A DNA stretch of 64,000 nt from Prasinococcaceae sp. CCMP 1430 (GCA_013416795.1 RQSC01000031.1:147173-211172), one strand, 5' to 3'. Shown: positions 1,448 through 59,943, counted from the stretch's first letter. The notes: generated by a model from the letters alone, not told the origin. Translations and numbers: made by a program.

Positions 1448-2913
1448 TCACGAGGCGTCGTACGGGTCGCTCACGGGCATCGCCGGCCGCAGAAATACGC
1501 CCACGCCGCGTGGCGCCCACACGCGCAGCTGGACGCGGCCGAAGCGGGATGCCCAGCCTTCGTCGACCGCCCCACCGGCCGTGAGCACCACCCACGCGCT
1601 CAGACCAGACACCGCCAGGTCGGCCGCGTGCGCCCGCCCGCCGGCGGGCACTTCGAGCTCCACCTCTCGCGCCACGTGCAGGCCGCCGCTCGCCTCGACG
1701 AGCGCAGCGCCCGGGCTGCCGGGAGCTGAGGGCGGCATCCACGCGGCCTCATCACCCTCGCCCTCCGCGGGCTCCGCCGCCACCGGGGTGCAAACCACGG
1801 AGAGGCTCAGCTGGCTCGGGCCGACGAAGCTCATCGCGAAGTCTGGCGGTGCCGACAGCACGTCGACGCGCGCGAGCGCGCCCCACGTCACGCTCAGCCC
1901 CTCGAGCGACGCGCCGAAGGTCGGGGCGTCCAGCGCGCCCGCGTACTCGTATGGCGGCGCCCGGGTGGTAGCGGCGGCGGCGGCCTGGAGGCGCGCCGCG
2001 CTGACGATGAGCGCGCGCATGCGCTTGCGCGGTGTCAACGCGGCCACGTCGTCGCCGTCGAGGAGTGTGTTGATGCGGTGCGAGAGCACCACGCCCGGCG
2101 TGTCGTAGAGCGCCGACTTTGGGGTGAATGCTTGCAGTTTGATGGCGCCGAGCGTTGTGCCCGGCATCGGCGAGGCCACGGGCAGCTTGCTGTCCTGCGC
2201 GAGAAAGTCGCCGCGGTCGCGCAGCGCGCCGAGCAGCGCGCGACAGAAGGTTGACTTGCCCACGTTGCTCGCGCCGACGATGTACACGTCGCGCCCGCTG
2301 CGCTCGCGCAGCGTGGCGCCCGCGACGCCGCTGACGCCGCTTTGGTCGCGATTGCGCGAGCGTGCGGCTACCGTGAAAGTCCCCGCCACTGTGAGCCGCT
2401 TGCGCTCGAGTTCGTCCTGCAGCCATTCGCGCACCGCCGCCTGCGAGGTCCCCTTGGGCAGCAGGTCGAACTTGGTGCCCACGGCTATCACCGGGTTGCG
2501 ACCGATGGCGTCGCGCACGCGCCCGAGCATGGTGCCCGACAGGTCGGTGAGGTCCAGCAGCAGCAGCACGAGCACGCGCTTGTCACGCAGCTGCTTGAGT
2601 TCCGCGACGAGCTCGTCCTGTGAGACGAGGCCGCGACCCCGCCGGTCGGCCAGGCCCTGGCCCTCGACAGCATTGACCATCGCGCCATGCGAGAGCTCGC
2701 AGCAGCGTGCGCACAGGAGCTGGTCGAGCTGGTGGTGTTTGCGGCGACGCTCGTACGTCTCGCGGTCGACGAAGCCCGGGGCGGACGGCTCGTCGAGCTG
2801 CACGCGCACGCCGCAGCCGTAGCATTGCGCCGAGCGGCGCTCGATGCCATCGCGCGTAGGGAGCGGCGCGCGGTCGCTCGAGCGCCGCGGCGCGCCTCCA
2901 AACCAGGCACACA
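1448..2913 (-). CDS. Circularly permuted GTPase, YqeH/NOA1(RIF1)/BPG2 family (5' exon(s) not resolved)
   Basis: CxxC...CxxC zinc finger (CYGCG...CARC), then G4 TKFD, G1 GASNVGKST, G2 PGTT, G3 DTPG in permuted order. Acceptor TGTGCAG ends at 2914; the N-terminus probably lies toward or in gap 3165-3871. Confidence 0.9.
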
Positions 2914-3164
2914 CTGCACAGATCCCTCTAATCCGAAATCAGCATATATATGGCGAGCCACGCGGAATCCATCCAAGAAGGAATCCATTTTACCCACACA
3001 CATGGAATCCTCATTTTGAACGATGGGATGCCTCCATGCGGGTTCCGCGCCGGCGATGGGGCGAGCAGGCGCGCACGAAAAAAAAAAAAAAACGGAGGTG
3101 GCCGCCGGGTCGCCAGCCGGGCAGCCGCCGGTGGCGGCAGCGCGCCCGCGCGCGCCACTCGTCG

Positions 3165-3871
3165 NNNNNNNNNNNNNNNNNNNNNNNNNNNNNNNNNNNN
3201 NNNNNNNNNNNNNNNNNNNNNNNNNNNNNNNNNNNNNNNNNNNNNNNNNNNNNNNNNNNNNNNNNNNNNNNNNNNNNNNNNNNNNNNNNNNNNNNNNNNN
3301 NNNNNNNNNNNNNNNNNNNNNNNNNNNNNNNNNNNNNNNNNNNNNNNNNNNNNNNNNNNNNNNNNNNNNNNNNNNNNNNNNNNNNNNNNNNNNNNNNNNN
3401 NNNNNNNNNNNNNNNNNNNNNNNNNNNNNNNNNNNNNNNNNNNNNNNNNNNNNNNNNNNNNNNNNNNNNNNNNNNNNNNNNNNNNNNNNNNNNNNNNNNN
3501 NNNNNNNNNNNNNNNNNNNNNNNNNNNNNNNNNNNNNNNNNNNNNNNNNNNNNNNNNNNNNNNNNNNNNNNNNNNNNNNNNNNNNNNNNNNNNNNNNNNN
3601 NNNNNNNNNNNNNNNNNNNNNNNNNNNNNNNNNNNNNNNNNNNNNNNNNNNNNNNNNNNNNNNNNNNNNNNNNNNNNNNNNNNNNNNNNNNNNNNNNNNN
3701 NNNNNNNNNNNNNNNNNNNNNNNNNNNNNNNNNNNNNNNNNNNNNNNNNNNNNNNNNNNNNNNNNNNNNNNNNNNNNNNNNNNNNNNNNNNNNNNNNNNN
3801 NNNNNNNNNNNNNNNNNNNNNNNNNNNNNNNNNNNNNNNNNNNNNNNNNNNNNNNNNNNNNNNNNNNNNNN
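3165..3871. other. Assembly gap (N-run); others at 6379-6632, 8217-8316, 13469-13997, 16272-16601, 34620-34801, 40575-41146
   Basis: N characters in the sequence, all flanked by extremely GC-rich gene 5' ends. Confidence 1.
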
Positions 3872-4044
3872 GCGCGCGCGCGGCGGCGCCGCCGCGCGAG
3901 CGCTCTCGCGCCACTCGGCGCCAGCGTCCCCTCGGCACCCCCGAGCCCCCCTCGAGCTCCCGAGGGCCGATCGCCGGCGCATCGCGACCGCCCGCCCCCT
4001 TCGCCCACACCGCTCGAGCCGCTTCCCTCTCCCCGGGAGCAGCT

Positions 4045-11832: not shown

Positions 11833-12020
11833 TAATATGTGCCTAAAGGACCCGTGGCCACCGCAAGCAAACACTTGTTGGCAGGAACACGCATCAGGCG
11901 CGGGCGAAAGGTGTACCGGCTGCGTGCGCATCAGACGTGGCCTTTTACGTTTCCTTGCAACCCATGGCGGCATCTGCACACCGCCGCTGTCGCGCGCACA
12001 CCTTGCATGGCAGAGCACGC

Positions 12021-13468
12021 TCAGCGCGGTTGCCTCCACGAGAATATCTTCACACTGCCGTTGTCGACGCCCACGAAGATGTACGGGCCCGCCGCGGCGA
12101 TCGCCTTGACCTCTTTGCGCTCCGAGATGATGCCGCGGTCGGCGAACGTTGGCAGCTCCAGGATGCGGACGACGTTGTCCAGCGGATTGGCGCAGAGCAG
12201 CACGGCCTTGCCCTCGCCATCAGCGGTGCCGCACATCGTCACGTAAGTCTCGCCCTGGTTGCCGCCCTCGGGGAACTGGTACACCCCCGCAAAGGGCGCG
12301 TTTGTGTCCTCATTGCCCGCGGCGTCGGTGGGTCGTCCCCAGACGCAGATCACGCCGCCCATATCGCACGTGATGGCGTTCGTGTTCCAGCACAGCACCT
12401 TTGTCACCGGCTGCGCATGCCCGGCGAGCTGCTGGAGCTGCCCGCCGTTCGCGGCGTCCCACACGAAGACGGCGTTGTCGAGACCGCCGGAGAAGAGCCG
12501 CCCGCCCACATTGGCCAGAGTCTGCACCGCGGCCGCGTGGCCATTCATGACACCGATACCCACGAAGGTGGCCTGCGCGGCGTCGAATTTCCACGCGCGG
12601 ATGGTCGTGTCCGCGCTCGCGCTGAAAAGGTGCTCGCCCGCGACGCACATGTCGTTCACGCAGCCTGTGTGGCCGACCATGTCGCGCACCGAGCCATCTG
12701 CCATCGTAATGCACTTGATGGTCCCGCTGACGAGACCCGCGAAGACGTACCCGCTCTCGGCGCACAGTGAGTGCACCTCCCCCCCCATCTGCAGCTCGCC
12801 TGTTTTTTCGCCGCTCGCGATCGACCACACCTTGACGAAGCCGTCCTTGGCGCCGGTGAAGAGCTGCTCGCCACACACGACGACCGCCATCGCAGCCTGG
12901 GTGTGCCCTCCGTTGCGCGAGCCGATCTCCTGCGTGAATGTAACATCGGCTGCGCAAGAGAGCGAAGCGGCGGCGGGTTCGGAGAGGTGGGTGATGTGTG
13001 GCGCAGAATACCACCAAGATGCGTGCAACCAATGACGGTGCGGCGATCCGGCGCGGCGACAGGTGGCGGGCGCGGCTCCGATCGTTAGTTAGGGTCGCTG
13101 CACGGACGCTTGCGCGCGCGGCGCGCGCAGTCGTATGCGCATGATCGGCGCATCTGCCACGCCCTCGCGGCGTGCTGCGCCGCGACAGGCGTGCTGACGG
13201 CCGATTGGCGCCAGTCGGGCAGCGTCCGTGCACGCTCGCTCGCTCGCTCGCTCGCTCGCTCGCCGACGTACGTGCTTTGGTGCCCTGGCCTGTGCCCGCG
13301 CCGCGCCCACGGCCACGGCCGCGGCCGCGGCCTCTGCCGCTGCCAAAGCTCTGTCTTCCCCCGCTCCGCCCGCCGCCGAAGTTCCCTCCCGTCGACCCGT
13401 TGTTGAAACCCTGATTAAAGCCGCCGCTGCCGCCTCCGCCGCCGCCGCGGCCGCGCCGCCGCCGGCCG
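12021..13468 (-). CDS. ZFWD-like WD40 protein with RGG-rich N-terminal region (5' partial)
   Basis: C-terminus ILELPTFADRGII..KEVKAI..GPYIFVGVDNGSVKIFSW matches plant ZFWD proteins. WD exon 12949-12021; upstream exon ends 13272 (C|GTACGT) and encodes RGRGRG/GGNFGG. The N-terminus is in gap 13469-13997. Confidence 0.75.
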
Positions 13469-14045
13469 NNNNNNNNNNNNNNNNNNNNNNNNNNNNNNNN
13501 NNNNNNNNNNNNNNNNNNNNNNNNNNNNNNNNNNNNNNNNNNNNNNNNNNNNNNNNNNNNNNNNNNNNNNNNNNNNNNNNNNNNNNNNNNNNNNNNNNNN
13601 NNNNNNNNNNNNNNNNNNNNNNNNNNNNNNNNNNNNNNNNNNNNNNNNNNNNNNNNNNNNNNNNNNNNNNNNNNNNNNNNNNNNNNNNNNNNNNNNNNNN
13701 NNNNNNNNNNNNNNNNNNNNNNNNNNNNNNNNNNNNNNNNNNNNNNNNNNNNNNNNNNNNNNNNNNNNNNNNNNNNNNNNNNNNNNNNNNNNNNNNNNNN
13801 NNNNNNNNNNNNNNNNNNNNNNNNNNNNNNNNNNNNNNNNNNNNNNNNNNNNNNNNNNNNNNNNNNNNNNNNNNNNNNNNNNNNNNNNNNNNNNNNNNNN
13901 NNNNNNNNNNNNNNNNNNNNNNNNNNNNNNNNNNNNNNNNNNNNNNNNNNNNNNNNNNNNNNNNNNNNNNNNNNNNNNNNNNNNNNNNNNNNNNNNNCCC
14001 CCCGCGCGGGCCGCGCGGCGCGCGCCCGCCCCCCGCGCGGCTGCG

Positions 14046-37230: not shown

Positions 37231-40200
37231 CTATCTGCGCATGGGATCGCCTCCGCTCGTGCCGTTCAATCCCATCTTCCCGCCGCCCTTGCTTGCTGCG
37301 CTGTTCACGTGCTGAGCGCCATTCGCCATCGCGCCATTCGCCATCGCGCCATTCGCCATCGCGCCATTCGCCATCGCGCCATTCGCCATCGCGCCATTCG
37401 CCATCGCGCCATTGGCCATGCCGTTCGGCTTGGCCACGGCAGCGCGAGCGCCCTCGCCTCCATGCCAGCTGCCGCCCATGCCGCCGTCGGCGCCCAAGAC
37501 GCCCGGCGCCGGAGAAGCGGACCGCCCCGAGGCGACCTTCTTCATGCAGGCACCCTTGCTGGCCCCGCCGTTGCCCGTTGCCGCACTCCCAAGCCCACCG
37601 CCGCCGCCGAAATTGGTCAGAGCAGCCGAGAGGGCAGCATTCAGGTTGTCGCGAGTTTGGCGCTTCCGAGTGCCTTCGTCCGAAGCCCTGGCTTCGCTGC
37701 CCAGCTCGGTTTGGCTGGACAGTCTCGAGAGCACGGGGGTGGTGTTGCCGCTGCCATTGCCCATCGCAGTGTTCACGGGCGGTGGGCGCTGCACCGAACC
37801 GTTCATCGCAGCAGCGCCATTGACGCCACCATTCGCGTGCCCGTTGGGAGGCGCCCCCATCGGCAAGTGCCCGTTGGAATGGGCAGCGGGGGCGGGCTGG
37901 CTCACCGTGCGAGCAACGGCCTGCGCTAGCGGCACCGTGCTGCCGAGCTTGGAATCAATCTCGCGACGAGGGCTCAGGCCAGGATCAGCAGCACCATTCT
38001 GCATCGCGTTTGGCTGCCCCGAAGTGCGTCGACCCTCCACGCGCACGGACTCGAGCCGGGAGGTCAGGTTCGCCATCGCTTGGGCATGAGCGCTCGTCAG
38101 CTCTCCCCTGCGGCGCTCGACACCCCCCACCCGCTCCCTACGACGTGCCTCGAGATCCATGAGCAGCTTCTCCCTCTCACGGGCGAACTCAGCCTCGATG
38201 GCCGACATCTCCGCAGCGAGCTCATCCATGCTCGCCTTGGTGTGCATCTCCAGGCTGGCCTGCTCCTCTAGAAGATGCTCCCTCGCATCAGCCTTCCTGC
38301 CAGAGGGCTCCGTGTGCGCGCGGGCCAATGGCGACGACGCAGGCACAGGCGTCGCTGTGGCCTTGGCCGGGGGTTCGGAGCTCTGGCGCGGGGCGTCCCA
38401 ATGGGACGCTGCCGCGGCGCTGGCATACGTAGCGGAATGCGGCTGCTGCAGCGCGTCCGTCGCCTGCGGCGCCGGCGAGCCGTTGGCGCTCGAAACGATG
38501 GAGGGCAAGACATTGTCCGACCGCGCCTTCGGCAGCGGGGATGTGGGCGCCGTCGCCGGCGCGGCCGCCGGCGCCGCGGTCTGTGAGGCTGCCGGCGCGG
38601 CCACGGGCGTCGCGATCGGCGAGGCCGCCGGCACTGCTGTCGGCACCGCAAGGCGCAGCCACCGGCGCGGCCGCGGCCGCGGGCGCCGGCGTGCCACTTT
38701 CGCCGGTGGCCTCCTCTTGTGCCACTTGCAGCGCATCCACCTCTTTCTGAATCTCCGTGGCAATGACAGCGATGTCGTCCGAGTTCAAAGAGAGCTCCGT
38801 CACCATCTCGCTTGCCACCTCTCCAGGCTTGTCCACATTGAGGTCGTAGTTGAAATTCACCTTGCGGCAGTGGCCATCGTGCGCGATTTTCAGCGTAAGT
38901 TTGTAGACGCCTTTCTCCATGACGCCGCGCACCCTGAAATCGCTCTTGTTGAGCGAGCTCCCACTGCGAGCAACTTGGGGTGGCTCCTCCGACGCATCGT
39001 TGTCGCTGCCGCTGCCCTCGGAGCGCGGGACGCCGCCCTTTGCGCCCGCGCCCTCAGGCTTGGTCGGAACAGATTCGTCCGCAGCCCCTTTGGCCGCGTG
39101 CACGGACGACACGGACGACACTTTGCTGACGCCATTGGAGCGAGCGCCTCCAGCAGCCGGCGCCGCGGCCGTGGAAGGCGCAGCCGCAGCCGATGGCGCG
39201 GGGGCGCTCGCGTCCGAGTCGACCTCCATGGACTCCTGGCGCGGCATTGCGGGCGGCGACGCTGAACGCGATCGTTGTTCCGCCGGCTTTGGAGGGCTGT
39301 GCCCCTCGCTGTCGGACCCGTCCGACCGCACGCCGTTCGACTCGGCCGATCGCGCGCTCTCCGTGGCCTGCTGGGCGCCCGACGCATCGCTAGGCGCGGG
39401 CCGCTCCTCCTGCGTCGGTGCCGGGCTCGGCGCCGAGGTCGGCGCCGGGCCCGGAGCGGCCTCCGGCTGGAGCGCAGGGACCTCGCTCGAGCGCGAGCTT
39501 ATCGACGTCACCGAGCCCTGCCTTGCCATGTCCTTCGAGGAGGAGGCCTGCCGTGCCATGTCCTTCGAGGAGGCCTGCCGCCCCATGTCCGCAACCTTGG
39601 CAGTGCTCGCGCTGTGCTTCAGGCCGCCCTCGGCCTTTTCCTGCTTGAAGAAGGGCGCGCTCAGAAGCTCCTGCGCGCTGGGGCGCTTGTGCGCCGGCAG
39701 CAGGCACATGCGGATGAGCTCACGCGTCTCCTCGTTCTTGATCTTCTTCAGCGCCCCGGGCATCTCCCGCTTGGAGACCTTGCGGTAGATCTGCGCCGGG
39801 TTCTCGCACTCGCTGTACGGGCACTCGTTGGTGATCAACTCCAGGAGGCACATGCCGAACGAGTAGATGTCCGCCTTCTCGTTGTACTCCTCCTCGTACA
39901 GCTCCGGCGCCATGAACTCCGGCGTGCCAAGCACAGAGTGCGCGGCTTGGGCGCGCAGCACGGTCGCCAGGCCCAGGTCGCCAATCTTCACCTCGCCCTG
40001 GTGGCCGTTGATGAAGATGTTGTCGCACTTCAGGTCGCGGTGGATGATCGGCGGCTCCTGCGAGTGGAGGTACAGCAGGCCCTTGAGGATCTGGCGGCCC
40101 CATCCGCGCACGGCCTTGACGTCGATGCGCTTGTGCTTCTTGCGGTACACGCGCAGCGACCCGCTCGTGAAGAACTCGGTCACAAAGTTGACGTCGCTGG

Positions 40201-40574
40201 TCTCCTCGTCGATCCAGGAGTCGAAGAACTTGATCACGTTCTTGTGGTGGAGCTCCTTGAGCAGGTCCACCTCGACGCGCAGGCGCTCCATCTCCTCTTC
40301 GCGGTGCAGCAGCGACTTGACGATGATCTTGTTCCACGCGACCTCCAGGCCCTCCTCCCTGTCGAAGCCGAGGTACACCTCCTTGTACGAGCCCTTGCCG
40401 ATGACCGTGGTGGTGCGGCCGTACCGCCGCGACGGATCGAGCTCGACGTACTCATCGTCGTCGTCGACCTCGTCGTCGTCCTCCTCCTGCTGCTCCGTGT
40501 CACTCCCCGCCTCCTGCTGCTCGGCTGCCGGCCCCGACGCGTCGGCGCCGCCGGCCGCGGCGGCCTGCGCCCCG
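37231..40574 (-). CDS. WNK: WNK (With-No-Lysine) protein kinase, 5' partial, with an apparent +1 frameshift near 38650
   Basis: [42 protein letters not shown]. An autoinhibitory-type domain ([11 protein letters not shown]...VASEMVTEL) precedes a coiled coil and a low-complexity tail. Confidence 0.93.
37316..37420. repeat. 15-bp tandem repeat x7 (GCGCCATTCGCCATC) encoding (MANGA)n in the WNK tail
   Basis: Six perfect units at 37316-37405 plus one variant unit at 37406-37420. Confidence 0.97.
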
Positions 40575-43288
40575 NNNNNNNNNNNNNNNNNNNNNNNNNN
40601 NNNNNNNNNNNNNNNNNNNNNNNNNNNNNNNNNNNNNNNNNNNNNNNNNNNNNNNNNNNNNNNNNNNNNNNNNNNNNNNNNNNNNNNNNNNNNNNNNNNN
40701 NNNNNNNNNNNNNNNNNNNNNNNNNNNNNNNNNNNNNNNNNNNNNNNNNNNNNNNNNNNNNNNNNNNNNNNNNNNNNNNNNNNNNNNNNNNNNNNNNNNN
40801 NNNNNNNNNNNNNNNNNNNNNNNNNNNNNNNNNNNNNNNNNNNNNNNNNNNNNNNNNNNNNNNNNNNNNNNNNNNNNNNNNNNNNNNNNNNNNNNNNNNN
40901 NNNNNNNNNNNNNNNNNNNNNNNNNNNNNNNNNNNNNNNNNNNNNNNNNNNNNNNNNNNNNNNNNNNNNNNNNNNNNNNNNNNNNNNNNNNNNNNNNNNN
41001 NNNNNNNNNNNNNNNNNNNNNNNNNNNNNNNNNNNNNNNNNNNNNNNNNNNNNNNNNNNNNNNNNNNNNNNNNNNNNNNNNNNNNNNNNNNNNNNNNNNN
41101 NNNNNNNNNNNNNNNNNNNNNNNNNNNNNNNNNNNNNNNNNNNNNNGCGCGCGCCGCGACGCACCGCGCCGCGCACCGCCGCGCACCGCCGGAAAAAAAA
41201 AATCAAAATCCGCGCGCGCGCGCGGCGCCCGCGGCGGCTGTGCCTGTGATGGGTCGGAAAATCGGAATGGCCGCCGGCTGCGAGGACGACGAGGAAAAGA
41301 GACGCCCGTCTTTTTTCCTCGGCCGGCCCGGAAGCATCCTCCCGTCCGTTCGCGGACGCGACGCCGATTTTGATTTTGATTTGACAGATTTTGATCGATG
41401 GGCAGTTTGATGGCGCTGCGTGTCGTGTCCGTTTGTTTGTCTGTTTGTTTGTTCGTTGTGGTGCGTGCTGATTTGGGGTTGGTTGGATGCGGCGCCGGCC
41501 GGCCGCTTCCATCTCCAAACCAAAAAAAAAAAAGCAATGCCGGGCTGCACCGGAATCGAATGATGGGAAATCCCAGTCTTTTTCTGCTCCCACCTGCCCG
41601 CATGCTGCGGCTGGGTGGCTGGACGTCCGTCCGCTGCTTCGCTGGATGTTTTCCCCATCCCTCGCGCGCGCGCCCTCGCGCCGTCGTCGCGCGCGCGTCG
41701 CGCGCGTTCCCCCATCCGCGCCGGGGCTCGCGCGGGCGCGTCCGCGGGCCGCGCGCCGCTCCAAAACCAAAAAAAAAAAGCAAACAGACCCTCTCCCAAC
41801 CGCAGCAAACCCGAATGACGCCCACGCTCGCAGCGCGCCCAGCCAGCGCGCAAGAAAATGGGTGATGCATTTACTATAAGGTCAAATGTACCCACGGGAT
41901 AGTAGTATATTCATAAACGCCGCTCCGGCTCGGGCCGCAACCCCTAACGCCCGACCGCCCCGTTCGAGCGTTTCGCCGGCCTCAAACCTGGCCTTTCCGC
42001 GCCCGCGAACGGCGGGCCTGCGGCTCCCTCCGTTTCCGGATCGTTTCCCCCCTCCGCGGCGCCCCGCCCGCGGCCCCCGCAAGCGCCTCTCGCAGGCCGA
42101 CTTTAACCCTAATGCTCATCCGGCAGGGGGCCTCCCTCGCCCCCCGCCATCCAAACGTCGGGACCCTCGGATCTCCCGTGGGTTCCCTTTCCGTGGTTTT
42201 CACAGCCACGACTAAGCCCGCGCGGGCGGACGTTTTTCGCGGATGGGCGGGACGCGCGTTCTGATCCGGCGGGGGCCCTTCCCTGCCGCGGGCTTTTCAT
42301 CGCCAGTCCTTGGCGCTGACCGAGCGGAACACCCGGTTTTGGAGGTTTTTTCGGCGGACGCGTCGTTCGGACCCGCGCGCGCGCTCGCGGATCCGTCTGT
42401 GGGTCCGCGGCGGCGGCGTCCAGGGCACCCCGCTCGCGCCCCGCCCACGCTTTTTCGGATGAGCGTGTGGGGTCGCGCCGCACACCGCGCGCGCACGCGC
42501 GGCGGTGAGCCCCTCGCAGGGCGACGCGCGGCGCGGACGAGCCCGCCGCCGAGTCCACCGCCGAGTCTGCCACCGAGCCCGCCACCGACTTTTTTCTTTC
42601 AAATTTCTTTTTTTTTCCGCGCGCGCGCTGCGCGCGCCGTCCCGCGGCGCTCGCTGAGCACCCCTCCCCCCCATGTCCCGAGGCGCTCCCAGCCGCGCAC
42701 GCGGCGCACGTGGGAGCCCTCGGGACGCAACCGCGTATCGATTCGCGGCTCGCCGGGGCAAACTCGGAACGAGCGAAACTCCTCACGAACGCGCTCGCTC
42801 GCCTGGCTCGGCGGTCGGTATGAAGTAGGAAGGTCGGCTTCCGCACCGCGGGGCGGGGCCGTACAGACGCCGATCGATCGATCGATCGAGACACCTGTCT
42901 GGTTGGCTGGTGGCGTGCCCTTTCGCTCGTCAATGAACTTTTCAATCATGGAAAGCGCCGCGTGTGTGGAGAGCAGCATCGGTGTATCGACGACCGATTG
43001 GAAACCGCCGATGCGACGAGACGGAAATCGTCCAGCTGTCGGCTCGGTGCGCGGCCGGCGGCGGCGGCGGGGTGGAGGATGGGGTGGGGCGCGGAGCGGA
43101 GACGATGAGCTGGCGGAGCGGGGCGCGTGCGGGCGAGCGCCGCGCGCGTGTGGCGGGTGCGGGCGCCTCAGCCAGGCCGCGGCGCGCGGCCGCCCGCAGT
43201 CTGCCGCTCCGCACACACCGATGAGCGATGCGGCCCGGCAGTTGAGAACTTTGAGTCGATTATTATGTGTTGATCCGGGCGCCATCAA

Positions 43289-53188: not shown

Positions 53189-54361
53189 ATGGAGCGCCAA
53201 GGGGCAGTCTTCAAGGTACTGGCGCGCGCCGGGCCGCTTCGCTGCGCTCGACAAGCGCGCTGGCCCTCAGACGGGCATCTCGTCTTGCTGGACGCTGCGG
53301 TAGATGTGCGCGCGATTTACAGGCATCGCGTTCACAGCTATCGGTGTTCTAACCGGTGCCCATCGCATACATCGCGCGCGGCGCGCAGCTCCTCCTCATT
53401 GGTGACTCGGGCGTCGGTAAAAGCTGCTTGCTGCTTCGCTTCAGTGACGGCACCTACACCGAACAGCACCTCAGCACCATTGGGATGGATTTCAAGATCA
53501 AGCCAGTGCAGTTCGGAGGTACGTACAACACGCGCGTGAGAGAGCGTGCATTAGCGACTGCCGGCCGGGACGCGCCTGCGCAAACGCACATCAAGGTCGT
53601 AGCCGCACTGTGCCAGCGCACGTCACGTCGCGTCCGGTTGCATCGCCCCCTCAACATCGCGCCGCCTGTGCTGACAAAGCCTGGCCGTTTGCGCGCAATC
53701 GCTCTTTCACAGACACAAACGTGCGGCTGCAGATATGGGATACAGCGGGGCAAGAACGCTTTCGTACCATCACAAGTAGTTACTACCGCGGCGCGCACGG
53801 CATCATCGTCGTGTACTCGGTTGCCGATCGAACTTCTTTCGACAACGTCTCCAAGTGGCTGAACGACATCGAAAAGTTCGCCTCACCGGGAGTTACCAAA
53901 TTGCTCGTCGGCAACAAGTGTGACCTTGTCAGCACTAGGGTGGTATCGCAGGCGGAGGGGCGCGCGTTGGCGGACTCGCTCGGGATGCCGTTCATCGAGA
54001 CCAGCGCGAAGGACTTGTGCGTGCGCTCGCCACGGCTTTCCAACGCCCCCTTCTATCGAGCACTCTCTAGTCTGCCGTCCGCTACGAGTGCGCGCGTAGT
54101 ATCGTCGCAATCCCATTCATTCCCCGTCTCGTGCTTGCCACGTGCGCTGACCTGACGCATGCACACACACTGCTGCGCGGGTGCAGCGTCAACGTGGAGA
54201 GTGCGTTTCTCACGATGGCAAAGGATGTCGTGGATCGCGTGCAGAAGAGCACGCAGCAGTACGGCGGGTACCAGCCAGGCGGCACGGTGGATTTCGGCTA
54301 CGGCGAGAACAGCTACGCGACCTTCAAGAAGCGCAAGAAGAAGTACGCGTGCTGCAGCTAG
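53189..54361 (+). CDS. Rab GTPase, divergent Rab1/RabD-like
   Basis: [45 protein letters not shown]-terminal CCS. Exons 53189-53215, 53389-53518, 53713-54016 and 54187-54361. Confidence 0.92.
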
Positions 54362-54504: not shown

Positions 54505-54524
54505 GAACCCTAACCCTAACCCTG
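54505..54524 (+). promoter_or_regulatory. Interstitial telomere-like motif (AACCCT)x3, candidate telo-box
   Basis: GAACCCTAACCCTAACCCTG lies about 190 bp upstream of the ATG at 54715. Confidence 0.55.
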
Positions 54525-54714
54525 TGTCAAGATTTCGCCCGGGCTTGCAATCCTGAACCCGAATCCGTAGTCCGCCTGCGGCCCCGGCGGCAGCCGCCGC
54601 CGCGGGGTGCCACAAGCGCCCCCCCCCGCCCCCTCCACCCCCCCCCCTCCCTCCCGCCACCCGGCACGCTCGCCTCGGTTGCATGGGCGGGTTGTGGCGG
54701 GAGGGGCCGGTGCG

Positions 54715-57700
54715 ATGCCAGGCGGCGGCTTTGGCAAGGGCATAGGCGGGAGCTACAAGGGTGGCGGCTTTGGCAAGGGCGTTGGCGGGAGCTACAAGGG
54801 CGGCGGCTTTGGGAAGGGCGTCGGCGGCAGATATGTGAAGGGCAGCGCCAGCGGGTATGGCAAGAGCGCTGGCGGGAGCGGAGGTGGTGGCGGCGCGAAG
54901 GCGTTTGCCGGCAGTGGTCCGAGCGCGGGCATGCTCACGGGGTACATCAAGCAGGCGTCGACGCTCGAGGCGCTCTTCGAGACCTTCTCGAAGCATGCGG
55001 CGCGCTTCAACCACGTCCACTTTGCGGCATGCTGGAGCGCTCTCGGCCGCCTGGCAAGGGGCGCGGGTAGGTCGCAGGCGTGGACGGAGGAGCATCGCGA
55101 GGCGCTGCGCGTGCTGGTGAGGCGCACGTCGAGCGCCGTGGACGCACCCGTGGCCGGCTGCGAGTTCCGCGCACGCGAGCTGGCCACCACAGCGCATGGC
55201 GCGGCCAAGAGCGGCGCCAGCGCAGGCGAGCTGATGGCGGCGCTCGCCCGCGGAGCAGAGCGCCGCGTTGGGGACTGCAACGCACAGGAGATGGCCAACC
55301 TCGCCTACGCGTTCGCCAAGGCACAACACGAGGCGCCTGAGCTTCTCGATGCCATTGCAGAGCACGCGAGACCGCGCCTGGGCGAGTTCAAGGCCCAGGA
55401 GCTATCCAATCTGGCATGGGCTTACGCGACGGCCAAGCGTGCCGCGCCAGCACTCCTCGACGCGATCGCCGAGCAAGCGCGGCCGCGCCTGCGCGAGTTC
55501 AATGAGCAGGCGCTCTCGAATACGCTCTGGGCGTACGCCAGTGCCAAGCACGAGGCGCCCGCGCTCTTCGATGCCATCGCAGAGCAGACAATTGCGCGCC
55601 CAAGCGAGCTCACTCCGCAGGCGCTGTCGACGATTGCATGGGCGTGCGCGAGTGCCAAGCATTGCCCTGCGCAGCTCCTCGATGCCATCGCCAAGGAGGC
55701 CAGGCCGCGGCTGCGCGAGTTCAGTGCTCAACAGCTTTCCAACTCGGTGTGGGCCTTTGCAAAGGCAGACCACGCGGACCCCGAGCTATATGCCGCACTC
55801 GCGGCGGCGGTCGCGCGGCGCCTGGGCGATTTCAACCCGCAGGACCTCGCCAGCACCGCCATGGCATTCGCCAAGGCGTGTCACGTGGACGCACAGCTCT
55901 TCGCTTCGCTAGCGCGCGCCGCCGAGACACGCGCGGACGAGTCGAACCTGCAGGACCTCGTCAGTACGGCTTGGGCATTCGCCAAAGTCGGCCAATTCGA
56001 TACCGGGCTGTACGCCGCGCTGTCGCGCTCGCTCATCGGCCGCCGGCTCGACGAGCTGGACGCGCCACACATAGCCAACGTCGCCTGGGCCTTCTCGAAA
56101 GCGGCGCAGACCCCAGACGTGGCCCTGTTTGCTGCACTGGCGCGCACGGCCACCCATCGCGTTGGCGATTTCGGCGCTCAAGACCTCGCGACCATCGCCT
56201 GGTCTTTCGCGAATGCCGACCAGCTGGAAACGCGACTGTTCGCAGCGCTCGCCAGGTCGGCCGAGCGGCTGCTTGATAAATTCTCCGCGGAGGACCGTGA
56301 CAACGCTGAATGGGCTTTCGTCCGGGCCGGACAGCAGCGCATCGTCAAGCTGCTGCGACAGCAGAAAGCACGTGGCGCATGCGGCCCAACTTCGCTCGCC
56401 AGAGCCCCTGACGTGGACGTGGGGAAGTGCGGCCGCATCGTTGTGGCGGGCGGCGGCATCGGCGGCGCGGCGGCTGCCGTGGCGCTGCAGAATAAAGGCT
56501 TCGACGTGGTTGTGCTCGAAGGCGACGCCAGCTTCGACGCACGCAAGCAGGGCTACGGCCTGACCATTCAGCAGCAGGAGGCGACGCAGGCGTTGGGAAT
56601 AAGCCTGGCGCAGGACGACGCGCCGTCAACCTCACACTACACCTTCGACGCGGCTGGCAACATCCTCGGCTTTTTTGGTGAGGCCTTTGGTAGCGCCAGC
56701 AAGGATCGGCGCGAGTGCGAGAATTCTGGGCGCTTCGTGCACATCCCAAGGCAGGTGCTGCGCTGCAGGCTGTTGGAGCGGGTTCGCCCGGGGACCATCC
56801 GGTGGGGCAGCAAACTCAAGAGCTTCAAGTGCTGGAGCGAAGATGATGGCGGGGGCGAAAACAACGAAAACGGAGTGACCGTCACCCTGGCAGACGGCAC
56901 CACCCTCGATGCCGCCTTGCTGGTGGGGAGCGATGGTATTTTTTCCACCGTGCGAAAGCAGCTCGACCTCAAAGGGGACCGTCTTAACTACGTCGGCCTC
57001 ATCGTTGTTCTAGGTATCGTACCCACTGAGTGTGGCAGCGCCGGTGACGACAGCGAGGGGCGCCAGGACGGCCACGCCCCGGCCATGGTTTCCCCCCTGA
57101 CGCATAGGCGCATCTTCGAGACAGTCGACGGCGCCGCACGCATCTACGCCATGCCGTTCACGACTACATCGACCATGTGGCAGCTGTCCTTTCCCTTCCC
57201 CGAGAAGCAGGCACGCGCACTGGCAAAGGATACGGCGGCCCTCAAGGACGAGATCCTGCGGCGGTGCGGCTCGTGGCACGCCCCTATCCCTGACCTGCTG
57301 CGCTCAACGCCGTTGGATGGCATGGCTGGCTACCCTGTGTACGACCGCCAACTGCTAGAGCCGCATGTTCTCAGGGAACCGGAGGGGCCGGCCACTCAGC
57401 TGAGACCGCAGCGCCGTGCCACGCTCATTGGTGACGCCGCGCATCCGATGACGCCCTTCAAGGCGCAGGGTGCGAACCAGGCCCTCAGTGACGCCGTGCT
57501 GCTCGCTGACAGCCTAGTGGAGAGCATTCAGCGTCACGGCCCCAGCGCAGGCATGGACGCCGCCCTCCCTCTCTTCGAGAAGGAGATGCTCCGTCGATCG
57601 TCGCGGATGGTGGTCGGGTCGCGCGAGAAGGCCAAGGAGCTACACAGCCCCTTGGCACTCCAGCCCGCGCGAAAGGTCCAGCGGGACACGTTGGGCGGCC

Positions 57701-58245
57701 TCGACATGCAGAAGTCCATCGGCATCCTGCTGGCCAAGGGCATCGGTGCCCACAGCGCGGCTGATCCCTTGGGCTTGGACGCCGTTGTGGAGGCGGCGAT
57801 TTCAAGCCTGAGGCGCAAGAGGTCAGTGCCCGCCACGGCGGTGGCCGATGTGGAGAAGGCAGGGTCGGTGAGAGCAGCGACCAAGAAGCGCAGGGCGAAC
57901 AACTTGGCAGACCAGGGTGAGGAGGGCGGCGGGGAGCCGGCTGATGACGGCAAGGCCAACGATGACGGCGGCTTCAAGTGGCGCCGGACTATGCGCAAGC
58001 ACCTCGATGCGGCCGGGGACAACGGAGTGCGGCGCAAAGATCTGCGCAAGGCGACGCTGCGCGACTTCCAGCGGCACCTCTCAAAGTCAAAAAAGGACGG
58101 CGTGTCCGCAGACGTCGCCCGCAAGCGTTGGATGTTCGCCGAGCCTGCCGAGCTCGACGCGCTCTTCCGCAGCCACCTCGCCCAGGCCGAGGCGGCCGGG
58201 CGCCTCAGCACGCGGGGTAAGATGGTGTACCGCGCGCGCACGTGA
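54715..58245 (+). CDS. Multidomain protein: GK/aromatic repeats + HPR/OPR-like helical repeats + FAD-dependent monooxygenase + basic LYAR-like C-terminal domain (1176 aa, intronless)
   Basis: (GGGFGKGVGGSYK) about x3; about 11 37-aa repeats F.xQ.L.N..WA.A; IVVAGGGIGG, LVGSDG, LIGDAAHPMTPFKAQGANQA; C-terminal FKWRRTMRKHL..GVRRKDLRK. Confidence 0.88.
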   Translation: MPGGGFGKGIGGSYKGGGFGKGVGGSYKGGGFGKGVGGRYVKGSASGYGKSAGGSGGGGGAKAFAGSGPSAGMLTGYIKQASTLEALFETFSKHAARFNHVHFAACWSALGRLARGAGRSQAWTEEHREALRVLVRRTSSAVDAPVAGCEFRARELATTAHGAAKSGASAGELMAALARGAERRVGDCNAQEMANLAYAFAKAQHEAPELLDAIAEHARPRLGEFKAQELSNLAWAYATAKRAAPALLDAIAEQARPRLREFNEQALSNTLWAYASAKHEAPALFDAIAEQTIARPSELTPQALSTIAWACASAKHCPAQLLDAIAKEARPRLREFSAQQLSNSVWAFAKADHADPELYAALAAAVARRLGDFNPQDLASTAMAFAKACHVDAQLFASLARAAETRADESNLQDLVSTAWAFAKVGQFDTGLYAALSRSLIGRRLDELDAPHIANVAWAFSKAAQTPDVALFAALARTATHRVGDFGAQDLATIAWSFANADQLETRLFAALARSAERLLDKFSAEDRDNAEWAFVRAGQQRIVKLLRQQKARGACGPTSLARAPDVDVGKCGRIVVAGGGIGGAAAAVALQNKGFDVVVLEGDASFDARKQGYGLTIQQQEATQALGISLAQDDAPSTSHYTFDAAGNILGFFGEAFGSASKDRRECENSGRFVHIPRQVLRCRLLERVRPGTIRWGSKLKSFKCWSEDDGGGENNENGVTVTLADGTTLDAALLVGSDGIFSTVRKQLDLKGDRLNYVGLIVVLGIVPTECGSAGDDSEGRQDGHAPAMVSPLTHRRIFETVDGAARIYAMPFTTTSTMWQLSFPFPEKQARALAKDTAALKDEILRRCGSWHAPIPDLLRSTPLDGMAGYPVYDRQLLEPHVLREPEGPATQLRPQRRATLIGDAAHPMTPFKAQGANQALSDAVLLADSLVESIQRHGPSAGMDAALPLFEKEMLRRSSRMVVGSREKAKELHSPLALQPARKVQRDTLGGLDMQKSIGILLAKGIGAHSAADPLGLDAVVEAAISSLRRKRSVPATAVADVEKAGSVRAATKKRRANNLADQGEEGGGEPADDGKANDDGGFKWRRTMRKHLDAAGDNGVRRKDLRKATLRDFQRHLSKSKKDGVSADVARKRWMFAEPAELDALFRSHLAQAEAAGRLSTRGKMVYRART

Positions 58246-58402: not shown

Positions 58403-59943
58403 TCACCAATCTTCATCCCAGCTGGCGAAGCCAGTCTTTGGCTTGTCTGACTTGGGTTTGGAGGACTCGCGTTTAGGACTGCGCTCGCGCTCGCGGTGGT
58501 CGCCGCCACGCTCGCCGTCGCGGCGGCCACGGTCGGGCGTATAGTGGTCGCGCGGCGCAGGCGCGTATCTGTCGCGGCCACCGTCACGGCGCCCATCGTA
58601 AGCATCGTAGCGATCCGCTCCGCCGTGCCTGTCCCTGTCACCGTACCCGCCGTAGCGATCTCGGTCGTAGCGATCTCGGTCGTAGCGATCCCGGTCGTAT
58701 CGATCTCGGTCGTACGACCCGTATCTATCTCGGTCGTATCTGTCGCGGTCGTACCTGTCGCGGTCATAGCGTTCGCTACTATCGCGTGCGTGCCCGCCGT
58801 GCACGCGGTCGCTGCCACCGCCCCGGCCGGAGCTACCATCCGTGCGATTGGGCGCACGTTGACCCATGCCGACAGAGAGCGTCTCCTTGACCGTCGGGGG
58901 GCGGGCGCTGGAGCCCGTTGCGCCGCGGCCCGTGGCGCCTCCCACACCACCATTGCCTCGCGCCGCCGTAGGCAGGCCCTTGTCTCCGAGCGCTTGCTTG
59001 ATGTCCCTACCCACCAGCGTAGGAACGCGTGGCAGCAGCGTGTCGAAGTAGTACTGCGCCAGGAGGAGATCGAGCACGAACGCGCCAATGGTAGTCTTGC
59101 TGCCGTCTGCACCCGGGGCGAACTCCTCCGTGTCCTCGAGGTACGGCTCGAACCAGCTCCACCATTGCTTTGGATCGCAAACGTACCGCAGCAGCAGGAA
59201 GCCCACGGCACGAATGTACGGCGAGTCCTCATGCGCGAGCAGTCTACTGATCTGCCCGTTGTTCAGGCGCATCTCAGCAAAACGAGCCACGAGGCAAAAC
59301 GCGGATGAAGGGCCGCGTGCGTTGCCGCCCATCCATGGCTCAACGTGGGACACTGCGAACGTGCGCATACAGGTTGTGCATGAGCGGATACGGGTAGTGC
59401 ACGCGCGCGAGTGGGGATGCGTGTGCGGCAGCGCAGAAATAACGGCAAACGCGGCATCGTTAGCACACTATGGAGCACACGCAGCCATGATCGCTCGCGG
59501 TGGCCCAGTGGAGGCGCTTCAACGTACTGCCTTGCCCGGCGGAAGTGGTCCCGCGGCCTGCCTGCCTGTGGGGTCCGCAGCACGAGCGGGCACCACCCTG
59601 GTAGGGCGAACGCGCGCTCGCAGAGGCGGCCACGCACACCGGCAACTGATTGCAGGGTGGTGCTGTGCTAACGTCCGCACCAACTGCATCGAGCGAGGGC
59701 ACGCGCTGCGCGAGAGATCTGCGAGACACGACCGCACCTGGCATCCCCCGCGCAAATTTCTCGCAGCGGCGGCGCTCGCCCCCTGCGCGCGGGGCAGCTT
59801 CACTCACCCTCATTGTAGACCTCGTCCACAAGCTCGTCAAAGGTTTCCACGTTGCGCAGCTGGCGCATGTAGTCGCTCGCCTGCACGTTCTGCGAGAGAA
59901 CGCCCTCCATGTTGAGCGTGCTCACGTTGCCATAGACCTCCAT
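58403..59943 (-). CDS. PRPF38B: Pre-mRNA splicing factor 38B (with RD/RS-rich tail)
   Basis: MEVYGN..LNME..LSQNV..SDY..L..F.ELVDEVYNE|VSHVEPW..GPSSAFCL..DSPYIRAVGFLLLRY. Exons 59943-59808 and 59352-58403; (DRYDR)n tail. Confidence 0.92.

Follow-up and report, generated by a model that had tools for sequence, protein, structure and literature searches.

We analyzed a 64,000-nucleotide stretch of DNA from Prasinococcaceae sp. CCMP 1430 (hereafter the window, with positions counted from its first letter), in which an open frame of 1212 codons on the forward strand (54607..58245) encodes, from its first ATG at 54715, a 1176 amino acid protein. This single intronless frame holds all four parts that had been described from the sequence alone, and the gene for this four-module protein is real and intact. 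The features of the locus are:

54506..54523 (+), (AACCCT)3 telomere-type short repeat (TRF, 3.0 perfect copies), 192 bp 5' of the ATG
54617..54662 (+), C-rich tract in the presumed promoter or 5' leader (read directly and in TRF rows)
54715..58245 (+), coding sequence, complete and intronless, 1176 codons plus stop (ORF list)
54715..54912 (+), disordered Gly/Lys-rich N-terminus, residues 1-66 (TRF, composition, pI 10.3, pLDDT about 32)
54925..55143 (+), N-terminal helical cap, residues 71-143 (predicted helices H71-143, pLDDT >90)
55165..56394 (+), eleven 37-38-aa HPR/OPR (FASTK-type) helical-hairpin repeats, residues 151-560 (register, FAST_1, PDB matches, model)
56335..56403 (+), long helix after the last repeat, leading into the enzyme, residues 541-563 (model, H541-563)
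56422..57822 (+), group-A FAD-dependent monooxygenase, residues 570-1036 (FAD_binding_3, PDB match to NicC, Foldseek)
56449-56466 (+), GxGxxG motif, GGGIGG at residues 579-584 (sequence and alignment)
56932-56937 (+), DG motif, GSDG at residues 738-741 (sequence and alignment)
57430-57447 (+), GDAAHP motif, residues 906-911 (sequence and alignment)
57811-57822 (+), RRKR basic cluster just before the linker (direct sequence reading)
57823..57978 (+), disordered linker, residues 1037-1088 (pLDDT <50 for residues 1037-1082)
57883-57894 (+), KKRR basic cluster within the linker (direct sequence reading)
57979..58233 (+), LYAR-type winged-helix domain, residues 1089-1173, pI 11.4 (PDB profile, model, VIA-align)

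Upstream of the gene, the telomere-type element AACCCTAACCCT at 54506-54523 is the sole occurrence within the window, with 0 expected from shuffles; its presence is all that speaks for the suggested telo-box-like role. The C-rich tract falls within the 353 bp that separate the ATG from the stop codon of a Rab-like gene upstream (about 54361).

The protein starts with repeats of a 39-bp unit encoding GGGFGKG[IV]GGSYK 13-aa units, which the sequence-only reading had noticed from 54721 and which TRF recovered as 2.7 copies at 54721-54827 (91% matches). Residues 1-95 include 35 Gly, 10 Lys and 0 Asp, and residues 1-66 are basic, with no acidic side chain among them. The same reading had seen no obvious transit peptide; indeed, the start is Gly-rich (53% glycine), predicted to be disordered and devoid of an amphipathic helix. 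Alignment places RGG/KGG-rich starts at the equivalent position in relatives, and no signal peptide was found in these, including members from secondary-plastid lineages. A second N-terminal type within the family has acidic residues followed by a KKKK cluster. The helical cap carries the family motif 'LTxxIKxAxTxExLF ... NHxHxxAxW', and this region is kept across family alignments.

The repeat array had been put at about 11 tandem 37-aa units of the HPR/OPR class, and both the count and the class held on scoring. Eleven unbroken 37-38-aa repeats start at residues 151, 188, 225, 262, 299, 336, 373, 410, 448, 486 and 523, and at the DNA level TRF detects a 111-bp period (3.6 copies, 55327-55727). 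Pfam FAST_1 matches five stretches of the array (E 8.7e-18; 64 bits vs a cut-off of 27.4), and matches in the PDB include RESC6 (E 6e-22), the OPR protein mL115 (E 9e-13), RESC8, mL123 and mS140. Each repeat forms two helices in the AlphaFold model (pairs within H153-537 at pLDDT >90), and the array fold resembles RESC6 (8fni_6) with a Foldseek TM of 0.81. Repeats 1 and 6-11 share 49-59% identity with the orthologous repeat vs 17-39% with other repeats of the same protein, which shows that the repeat register is conserved. With a pI of 6.8 (5.2-7.1 in 12 members), the array lies between neutral and slightly acidic; its own value is compatible with sequence-specific RNA binding but no argument for it.

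HPR-RAP proteins carry the arrays closest to this one (36-50% identity), and in P0418 a related HPR array is joined to a pseudouridine synthase (PseudoU_synth_2, E 7e-21). Based on the kinship of this repeat class, we infer that the array may be a sequence-specific RNA binder. Neither FAST_2 nor RAP matched the protein at E values up to 10, and both are absent from the precomputed Pfam lists of the HPR-FMO (flavin monooxygenase) clusters. The proposal that RAP is replaced by an enzyme thus stands: the long helix after the last repeat, with an 'IVKxLRQRR' motif kept across the family, leads into a group-A FAD monooxygenase.

This domain matches FAD_binding_3 (E 8.5e-20; 71.7 bits vs a cut-off of 22), and its closest PDB sequence match is NicC (E 8e-19). 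The three motifs named beforehand (GxGxxG, DG and GDAAH) are all intact, and GGGIGG, GSDG and GDAAHP show no or almost no variation among 39 family members, in which about 150 alignment columns are invariant. The model has a PHBH-like two-domain fold, with Foldseek E-values of 1e-15 to TetX, AbsH3, HpxO, 3HB6H and NicC (TM 0.73-0.80, normalized by target), followed by a helical C-terminal extension that is family-specific. Scoring against named hydroxylases (NicC, HpxO, 3HB6H, UbiH/Coq6 and salicylate hydroxylase) with NCBIfam curated equivalog cut-offs left every value far below the cut-off, the best being PRK07538 (94/400 bits), 3HB6H (90/459), HpxO (77/500) and COQ6 (56/489). The enzyme forms a clade of its own, at only 20-24% identity to characterized small-molecule hydroxylases.

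Beyond this clade, two types of methyltransferase occur fused to related FMOs: RlmN/Cfr-like radical-SAM RNA methyltransferases (E 2e-64; two independent contigs), with an RlmN match below the NCBIfam equivalog cut-off (218 vs 290 bits), and a Bmt2-like one; these fusions lie in a distant, zinc-finger half of the FMO tree, away from the HPR clade. One family member additionally carries a DEAD-box helicase. The wider FMO family carries a DnaJ-type 2x CxxCxGxG zinc finger, which in DnaJ serves protein binding. The neighborhoods of bacterial zinc-finger FMOs in Moritella, Flavobacterium and Akkermansiaceae had no shared context, no clue to function and nothing pointing to RNA.

The C-terminal tail follows a linker region whose RRKR and KKRR clusters resemble putative nuclear-localization signals. 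The tail had been likened to the LYAR winged helix, and LYAR is its top match by sequence, profile and structure: it ranks first in the PDB whether the query is the single sequence (E 0.0036) or a profile (E 1e-4), and VIA-align gives human LYAR 308-379 as the best match (Z 10.8, rmsd 1.8 Å, 72/72 residues, 22% identity). The core of the winged-helix model has pLDDT >90. Plain Foldseek on the tail returned non-significant E-values, with winged helices as all of its matches; VIA re-alignment put LYAR first. Pfam WHD_LYAR (PF25879) matches faintly in the orthologue P0025. The N-terminal C2HC zinc fingers of LYAR (zf-LYAR) have no match in the protein, and the tail profile, run against 1.8 billion representative proteins, reached no LYAR proteins at E 1e-3; the relation is therefore one at the domain level only. 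The 41 matches of that search were family tails and BRCT and Myb proteins, and the module is otherwise C-terminal in BRCT, Myb+BRCT and Myb+DEK_C proteins. Within the family, the LYAR-type winged helix alternates with a KKE-rich tail (KKEKK runs) and a Tudor/Agenet-like tail, the latter named by resemblance only because its Agenet, Tudor and SH3 matches are weak (best E 6e-4 to 7e-3).

The join between repeats and enzyme recurs in independent assemblies and in the transcriptomes of relatives. The same 1176-aa product is encoded on a TARA scaffold (12 nucleotide differences; 8 synonymous and 4 non-synonymous codon changes) and on a Logan contig (9 differences; 5 synonymous and 4 non-synonymous), with the frame intact in both environmental assemblies and the 4 amino acid changes all outside the enzyme and tail. 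The full-length AlphaFold model has a pLDDT of 80.7 and a pTM of 0.69, with disorder limited to residues 1-66 and 1037-1082. The HPR+FMO fusion is present in >70 protein clusters, with FMOs 50-74% identical, from green algae, cryptophytes, haptophytes, ochrophytes and dinoflagellates, some of them from transcriptomes; named sources are Cymbomonas, Pycnococcus, Teleaulax, Gymnodinium, Symbiodinium, Amoebophrya, Triparma, Emiliania and Chrysochromulina. Complete transcripts with the same domain order were found for Gymnodinium smaydae and Teleaulax amphioxeia. The fusion FMOs form one clade (SH-aLRT 100) with a long stem and short inner branches in a quick IQ-TREE run with SH-aLRT support only. 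The HPR-FMO family is old, strongly constrained, and present in many marine algae and alveolates. Some metagenome gene calls split the family at introns (e.g., L008). Our literature search, including survey papers on HPR and alpha-solenoid proteins, found no description of an HPR/OPR-monooxygenase fusion.

The sequence-only reading had proposed a nuclear or nucleolar RNA-binding hydroxylase or redox-regulated RNA factor. Its anatomy stood in every part, and the outcomes for the join, the repeat class and the grouping of the enzyme gave none of the results that it had named as refuting; its RNA link and cellular placement are ones that we infer. Our best reading, to which we assign a probability of about 0.4, is an RNA- or RNP-tethered oxygenase. 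In this mechanism, the protein would be nuclear or nucleolar, or would work on ribosomal particles. The repeat array, with help from the winged helix and the Gly-rich basic N-terminus, would grip one particular RNA or ribonucleoprotein particle, and NAD(P)H would reduce the flavin domain, which would then use O2 to oxidize a nearby group, most likely by hydroxylation, and this group could be a base of the bound RNA or a residue of an attached protein. The logic would be that of PPR-DYW editing factors and HPR-RAP proteins, in which the array aims and the fused enzyme acts.

A link to RNA is suggested by the HPR-RAP kin of the array, the pseudouridine synthase fusion, the RlmN-like and Bmt2-like FMO fusions and the DEAD-box member. 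As to placement, the RGG/KGG starts and the swappable tails appear nuclear or nucleolar and not organellar. The company that the winged-helix module keeps with BRCT, Myb and DEK_C likewise points to a nuclear or ribosomal setting, as does the LYAR C-terminus, which occupies the ribosomal A site (10.1101/2020.05.18.102467). Weighing against the tethered oxygenase, the RlmN and Bmt2 fusions are distant from the HPR clade, the RlmN match is sub-cut-off and the bacterial neighborhoods are uninformative. Nor do we know of any group-A flavin monooxygenase that acts on RNA.

A narrower form of the tethered oxygenase, which we consider unlikely, is a nuclear or nucleolar FMO, aimed by the HPR array and the LYAR-type winged helix, that would put a site-specific oxidative mark (e.g., a hydroxylated base) on rRNA, pre-rRNA or ribosome-bound RNA.

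A somewhat improbable alternative, yet the strongest of those considered, is that the array serves as a protein or particle scaffold and RNA is left chemically unmodified, while the flavin domain has a protein side chain or small metabolite as its substrate, or is a redox or NAD(P)H sensor that regulates an RNA-protein complex. Two observations favor it and at the same time count against the tethered oxygenase: the enzyme's close relatives of known structure are all small-molecule hydroxylases (TetX, HpxO, NicC and 3HB6H act on small aromatic molecules), and the array, unlike many RNA-binding solenoids, is not basic. The DnaJ-type zinc finger in the wider FMO family also fits this alternative, and MICAL, which oxidizes actin methionines, would by analogy be a precedent for a group-A FMO aimed at a macromolecule by fused domains. 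However, the nearest kin of the array are HPR-RAP proteins; its structurally known kin RESC6, mL115 and mS140 are found on RNA within editing complexes and mitoribosomes; and RNA-enzyme fusions recur in both parent families. The very high conservation of the whole FMO surface weakly suggests a large fixed partner. As a possible precedent for HPR proteins that do not bind RNA, we considered a lobster 'HPR protein' (PMC13160164) and rejected it: its 37-aa coil-helix-coil unit is of unrelated sequence and not FASTK-type.

Less probable still would be an organellar (mitochondrial or plastid) RNA-maturation factor, with the oxygenase in the place of RAP and the basic, Gly-rich N-terminus as an unusual presequence. 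Nearly all HPR/OPR/FASTK proteins characterized so far are organellar (PMC6212722; PMC13126933), which favors this explanation and argues against the nuclear placement of the tethered oxygenase, and a basic start free of acidic residues would suit a presequence. Nevertheless, that start is mostly glycine, predicted to be disordered and lacks an amphipathic helix; members from secondary-plastid lineages have no signal peptide; and the other N-terminal type begins acidic before its KKKK cluster. In addition, the LYAR-type winged helix, the Tudor/Agenet-like tail, the KKEKK runs and the NLS-like clusters are what nuclear or nucleolar proteins typically carry, and the winged-helix module co-occurs with BRCT, Myb and DEK_C. 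An argument that Amoebophrya has no organelle genome and hence that the target is nuclear was dropped, as the claim that it lacks mtDNA is disputed (PMC8136515, PMC12005148).

Nothing was found in favor of an artefact, be it an assembly chimera or a pair of neighboring genes taken for one, and its chance is negligible given one uninterrupted 1176-codon frame in the window, the same ORF in two independent environmental assemblies, the complete G. smaydae and T. amphioxeia transcripts with the same domain order, the monophyly of the fusion FMOs, and a model that is confident and continuous across the junction.

Helical-repeat RNA binders that bear an enzyme (PPR-DYW, PRORP and HPR-RAP) are natural models for programmable RNA tools, and to our knowledge all of them deaminate or cut; in this protein an array of that kind is joined to an oxygenase. 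The retention of the fusion at 50-74% identity across algal groups points to an important, unrecognized function in major ocean phytoplankton. If RNA is the target of the tethered oxygenase, the protein would represent a new class of RNA-modifying enzyme, and its modification would probably be new as well. An RNA mark would make it the first group-A flavin monooxygenase acting on RNA and the first non-organellar system of repeat array plus base-modifying enzyme, widespread in marine phytoplankton. If the target is a protein or metabolite, this would still be an unusual use of an HPR array outside organelles. The wider zinc-finger-FMO family, with its RlmN-like fusions and bacterial members, would become interpretable too.

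Compared with known systems, the protein shares with human FASTK/FASTKD1-5, apicomplexan HPR proteins and algal HPR-RAP proteins (P0317-P0336) the same 37-38-aa helical-hairpin repeat, with its FAST_1 match, and an array followed by a C-terminal catalytic-type domain. Unlike them, it lacks FAST_2 and the RAP nuclease-like (PD-(D/E)XK-like) domain, with a flavin monooxygenase in that position, and it has no organelle-type presequence but extra RGG/KGG and winged-helix modules. Sequence similarity (E 6e-22 to 4e-4) makes its array a homologue of trypanosome RESC6/RESC8, Chlamydomonas mL115, Polytomella mL123 and Toxoplasma mS140, all seen on RNA in solved complexes. Unlike the fusion, these carry no enzyme domain and serve in mitochondria as structural or RNA-holding subunits.

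The enzyme has the fold and the GxGxxG, DG and GD motifs of TetX, HpxO (urate), NicC (6-hydroxynicotinate), 3-hydroxybenzoate 6-hydroxylase and AbsH3, and by analogy with the TetX/HpxO/NicC class it may be a single-component NAD(P)H/FAD/O2 enzyme. It differs from that class in its own clade, its family-specific helical extension and its fused macromolecule-binding modules. With LYAR (cell growth-regulating nucleolar protein) it shares the C-terminal winged helix, with the motif F-x-W ... LRKxVL, but its N-terminus is Gly-rich and disordered, without C2HC zinc fingers.

Finally, two likenesses are analogies only. MICAL is also a group-A FMO aimed at a macromolecule by fused binding domains; it differs in its CH and LIM targeting domains, its actin substrate and its FMO subfamily. 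In mechanism, PPR-DYW and PPR-PRORP likewise combine an RNA-reading helical-repeat array with an enzyme acting on a nucleotide near the bound site, but they are non-homologous and organellar, use a 35-aa PPR repeat, and carry out deamination or cleavage.

The gene for the HPR-FMO protein (Gly-rich start, HPR/OPR repeat array, group-A FAD monooxygenase [FMO], linker and LYAR-type winged-helix tail) lies within a single unbroken frame of the window. All sequence features listed by the sequence-only reading, which had proposed a nuclear or nucleolar RNA-binding hydroxylase or redox-regulated RNA factor, were found in the window, and that observation is fully confirmed.

Features of the HPR-FMO gene and its flanks
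53356-54361 (+): Rab-type small GTPase gene, several exons, upstream
54506-54523: (AACCCT)3, with no second copy within the window
54607-58245 (+): unbroken frame in the ORF listing
54715-58245 (+): HPR-FMO ORF, 1176 codons from the first ATG
54721-54827: 39-bp repeat, 2.7 copies, 91% matches
55327-55727: 111-bp (37-aa) repeat
58403-59368 (-): PRP38 splicing-factor gene, convergent

The gaps between the stop of the Rab-like gene and the HPR-FMO ATG (353 bp) and between the HPR-FMO stop and the PRP38 gene (157 bp) leave scant space for an overlooked exon. No tie was found between the (AACCCT)3 element upstream of the ATG and regulation. The Rab-type gene was recognized from Rab motifs, including ETSAK, legible in ORF pieces, and from a C-terminal Cys-Cys motif. 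The PRP38 call comes from a Pfam PRP38 match on the matching metagenome contig; its product has a tail with a long Arg-Asp/Tyr repeat ('DRYDRDRY...'), and a PHF5-like gene comes next on TARA contig L001. Across the window, G+C is merely 45-50% in three 2-kb stretches (2001-4000, 12001-14000 and 40001-42000), against a background of 63-70%.

The HPR-FMO fusion is real, and its architecture is that of a conserved natural family. The same 1176-aa ORF appears again on a TARA Oceans scaffold and in a sequencing run that was assembled separately, where it differs from the window by 12 and 9 nt, respectively, with no indels; the four amino-acid changes in these environmental copies spare both enzyme and tail. 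A search for relatives, with the enzyme region as query and long proteins required, identified about 80 clusters with the same domain order (enzyme identity 50-74%), including proteins of Cymbomonas, Pycnococcus, three Symbiodinium species, Triparma, Chrysochromulina, Emiliania, Prymnesium and Amoebophrya, and from transcriptomes of Gymnodinium smaydae, Yihiella and the cryptophyte Teleaulax, some with complete ORFs. In a quick maximum-likelihood tree of the FMO domain, the fusion FMOs form one clade (SH-aLRT = 100) with a long stem and short internal branches, whose sister group consists of stand-alone eukaryotic paralogues. The environmental copies, clusters, transcriptomes and single FMO clade bear out the fusion as first read, and the chance that it is an artefact is negligible. 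No description of an HPR/OPR array fused to a flavin monooxygenase was found in the literature searched.

The three domain assignments of the sequence-only reading (HPR/OPR-class repeats, group-A FAD monooxygenase, LYAR-like tail) also stood up to database and structural comparison. The array comprises eleven repeats of 37-38 aa, starting at residues 151, 188, 225, 262, 299, 336, 373, 410, 448, 486 and 523. Pfam detects FAST_1 in five stretches (E = 8.7e-18), with no match to FAST_2 or RAP in the protein, and the array matches solved structures of trypanosome RESC6 (E = 6e-22) and the Chlamydomonas OPR protein mL115 (E = 9e-13), as well as RESC8, mL123 and Toxoplasma mS140, which together identify the repeats as HPR/OPR-class; one recent survey (PMC13126933) places HPR within OPR. 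Repeats 1 and 6-11 share 49-59% identity with the same-numbered repeat of orthologues versus 17-39% with other repeats of the same protein, indicating that the repeat register is old. Among repeats 2-5 (55165-55830), mutual identity is 49-65%, and they have in common a variant consensus, 'WAYA[TS]AK...LLDAIAEQ', also present in Pycnococcus, which suggests concerted evolution (homogenisation) of this part of the array in the Prasinococcaceae sp. lineage. The pI of the array (5.2-7.1) is neutral to slightly acidic, which calls for caution in reading it as RNA-binding.

The enzyme matches FAD_binding_3 in Pfam (residues about 570-950, E = 8.5e-20). Among solved structures, NicC (E = 8e-19), AbsH3 and tropone monooxygenase come closest in sequence, and TetX, AbsH3, HpxO, 3HB6H and NicC in fold (TM 0.73-0.80, 20-24% identity); no NCBIfam equivalog came close to its cut-off. 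An alignment of 39 members has about 150 invariant columns, and the domain mostly has a pI of 8.2-9.6. All the solved relatives act on small aromatic molecules, which urges caution over an RNA substrate and favors the view that the protein oxidises small molecules or proteins on a scaffold, or acts as a redox sensor, a reading that we regard as somewhat unlikely.

Links to RNA are present in both parent families. On the repeat side, HPR-RAP proteins (36-50% identity) come closest to the array outside the family, and other related arrays are fused to RRM or SAP domains. Within the family, one HPR-FMO member from a metagenome (P0039, 1845 aa) has a DEAD-box helicase added at its N-terminus (DEAD, E = 6.5e-33; Helicase_C, E = 2.6e-15). 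On the enzyme side, the next tier of FMO relatives (about 40% identity, about 500 aa) is widespread in bacteria and diatoms and has a pair of DnaJ-type CxxCxGxG zinc knuckles immediately N-terminal to the FMO (P0166 of Moritella viscosa, on contigs L003-L005; P0187; P0203; about 60 others). These proteins are annotated solely as 'FAD-dependent oxidoreductase' or 'salicylate hydroxylase', and the gene neighbourhoods of the bacterial ones are neither conserved nor informative. Two clusters of this tier (P0084 and P0096) include a fused RlmN/Cfr-like radical-SAM RNA methyltransferase (E = 2e-64; 218 bits, under the 290-bit equivalog cut-off). P0084 is a single 947-aa ORF that combines the methyltransferase, two CxxCxGxG knuckles and an FMO about 40% identical to that of the window, and it occurs on each of two independent contigs from marine metagenomes (L009:1494-4337 and L010:1099-3942); we know of no prior description of this architecture. 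Another metagenome protein of this tier, P0089 (666 aa), joins the same FMO family to a domain resembling Bmt2, a 25S rRNA m1A methyltransferase family; its branch in the tree is very long. Since the RlmN-like and Bmt2-like fusions fall in the half of the tree distant from the HPR clade, they are only moderate support for linking the wider FMO family to RNA.

The tail gave LYAR as best PDB match both as a single sequence (E = 0.0036) and as a 21-sequence profile (E = 1e-4), with a motif in common, F-x-W ... LRKxVL. Its AlphaFold model (core pLDDT above 90) superposes best on residues 308-379 of human LYAR (Z = 10.8, rmsd 1.8 Å, 72/72 modelled residues), exceeding cullin WHB and linker-histone winged helices by 1.5 Z; WHD_LYAR of Pfam matches faintly in an orthologue (P0025). 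In the full-length model (pLDDT 80.7, pTM 0.69), each repeat forms a helix pair, a long helix (541-563) runs into the enzyme, the winged helix spans 1089-1173, and disorder is confined to residues 1-66 and 1037-1082. Of 1.8 billion proteins searched with a winged-helix profile, just 41 matched. Those scanned among the longer matches (P0237-P0263, 286-407 aa) contain BRCT, Myb plus BRCT or Myb plus DEK_C, with the winged helix at their end; among nuclear proteins of these protists it appears to behave as a mobile module.

Most N-termini in the family are RGG- or KGG-rich and then read 'PSPALLTANIKNA', while a second type begins with acidic residues followed by 'KKKKxGKKER'; no signal peptide was detected in those examined. 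The C-terminal tails are interchangeable across the family: LYAR-type winged helix, Tudor/Agenet-like (one or two barrels, weak matches), a 'DWWKT..FDGYTGEEW' motif, or KKEKK runs. In the HPR-FMO protein, the winged helix (pI 11.4) and the Gly-rich start are both basic, and the linker has RRKR and KKRR clusters. In inactive human 80S ribosomes, the C-terminus of LYAR occupies the A site (10.1101/2020.05.18.102467). Taken with the RGG/KGG starts, tail types, basic linker clusters and winged-helix partners, this suggests a probable location in the nucleus or nucleolus or on ribosomal particles, and we consider an organellar factor improbable.

Our tentative reading (probability about 0.4) is that the HPR-FMO protein is a flavin oxygenase tethered to RNA or an RNP and working outside organelles; should RNA prove to be what it acts on, it would represent a new RNA-modifying enzyme class. 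It is a variation on the 'helical-repeat array plus enzyme' theme. P0418 (722 aa, from a Logan assembly), in which an HPR/FAST_1 array of the same repeat family is joined to an RluA-type pseudouridine synthase (PseudoU_synth_2, E = 7e-21), is a further case of a repeat array plus an RNA-modifying enzyme.
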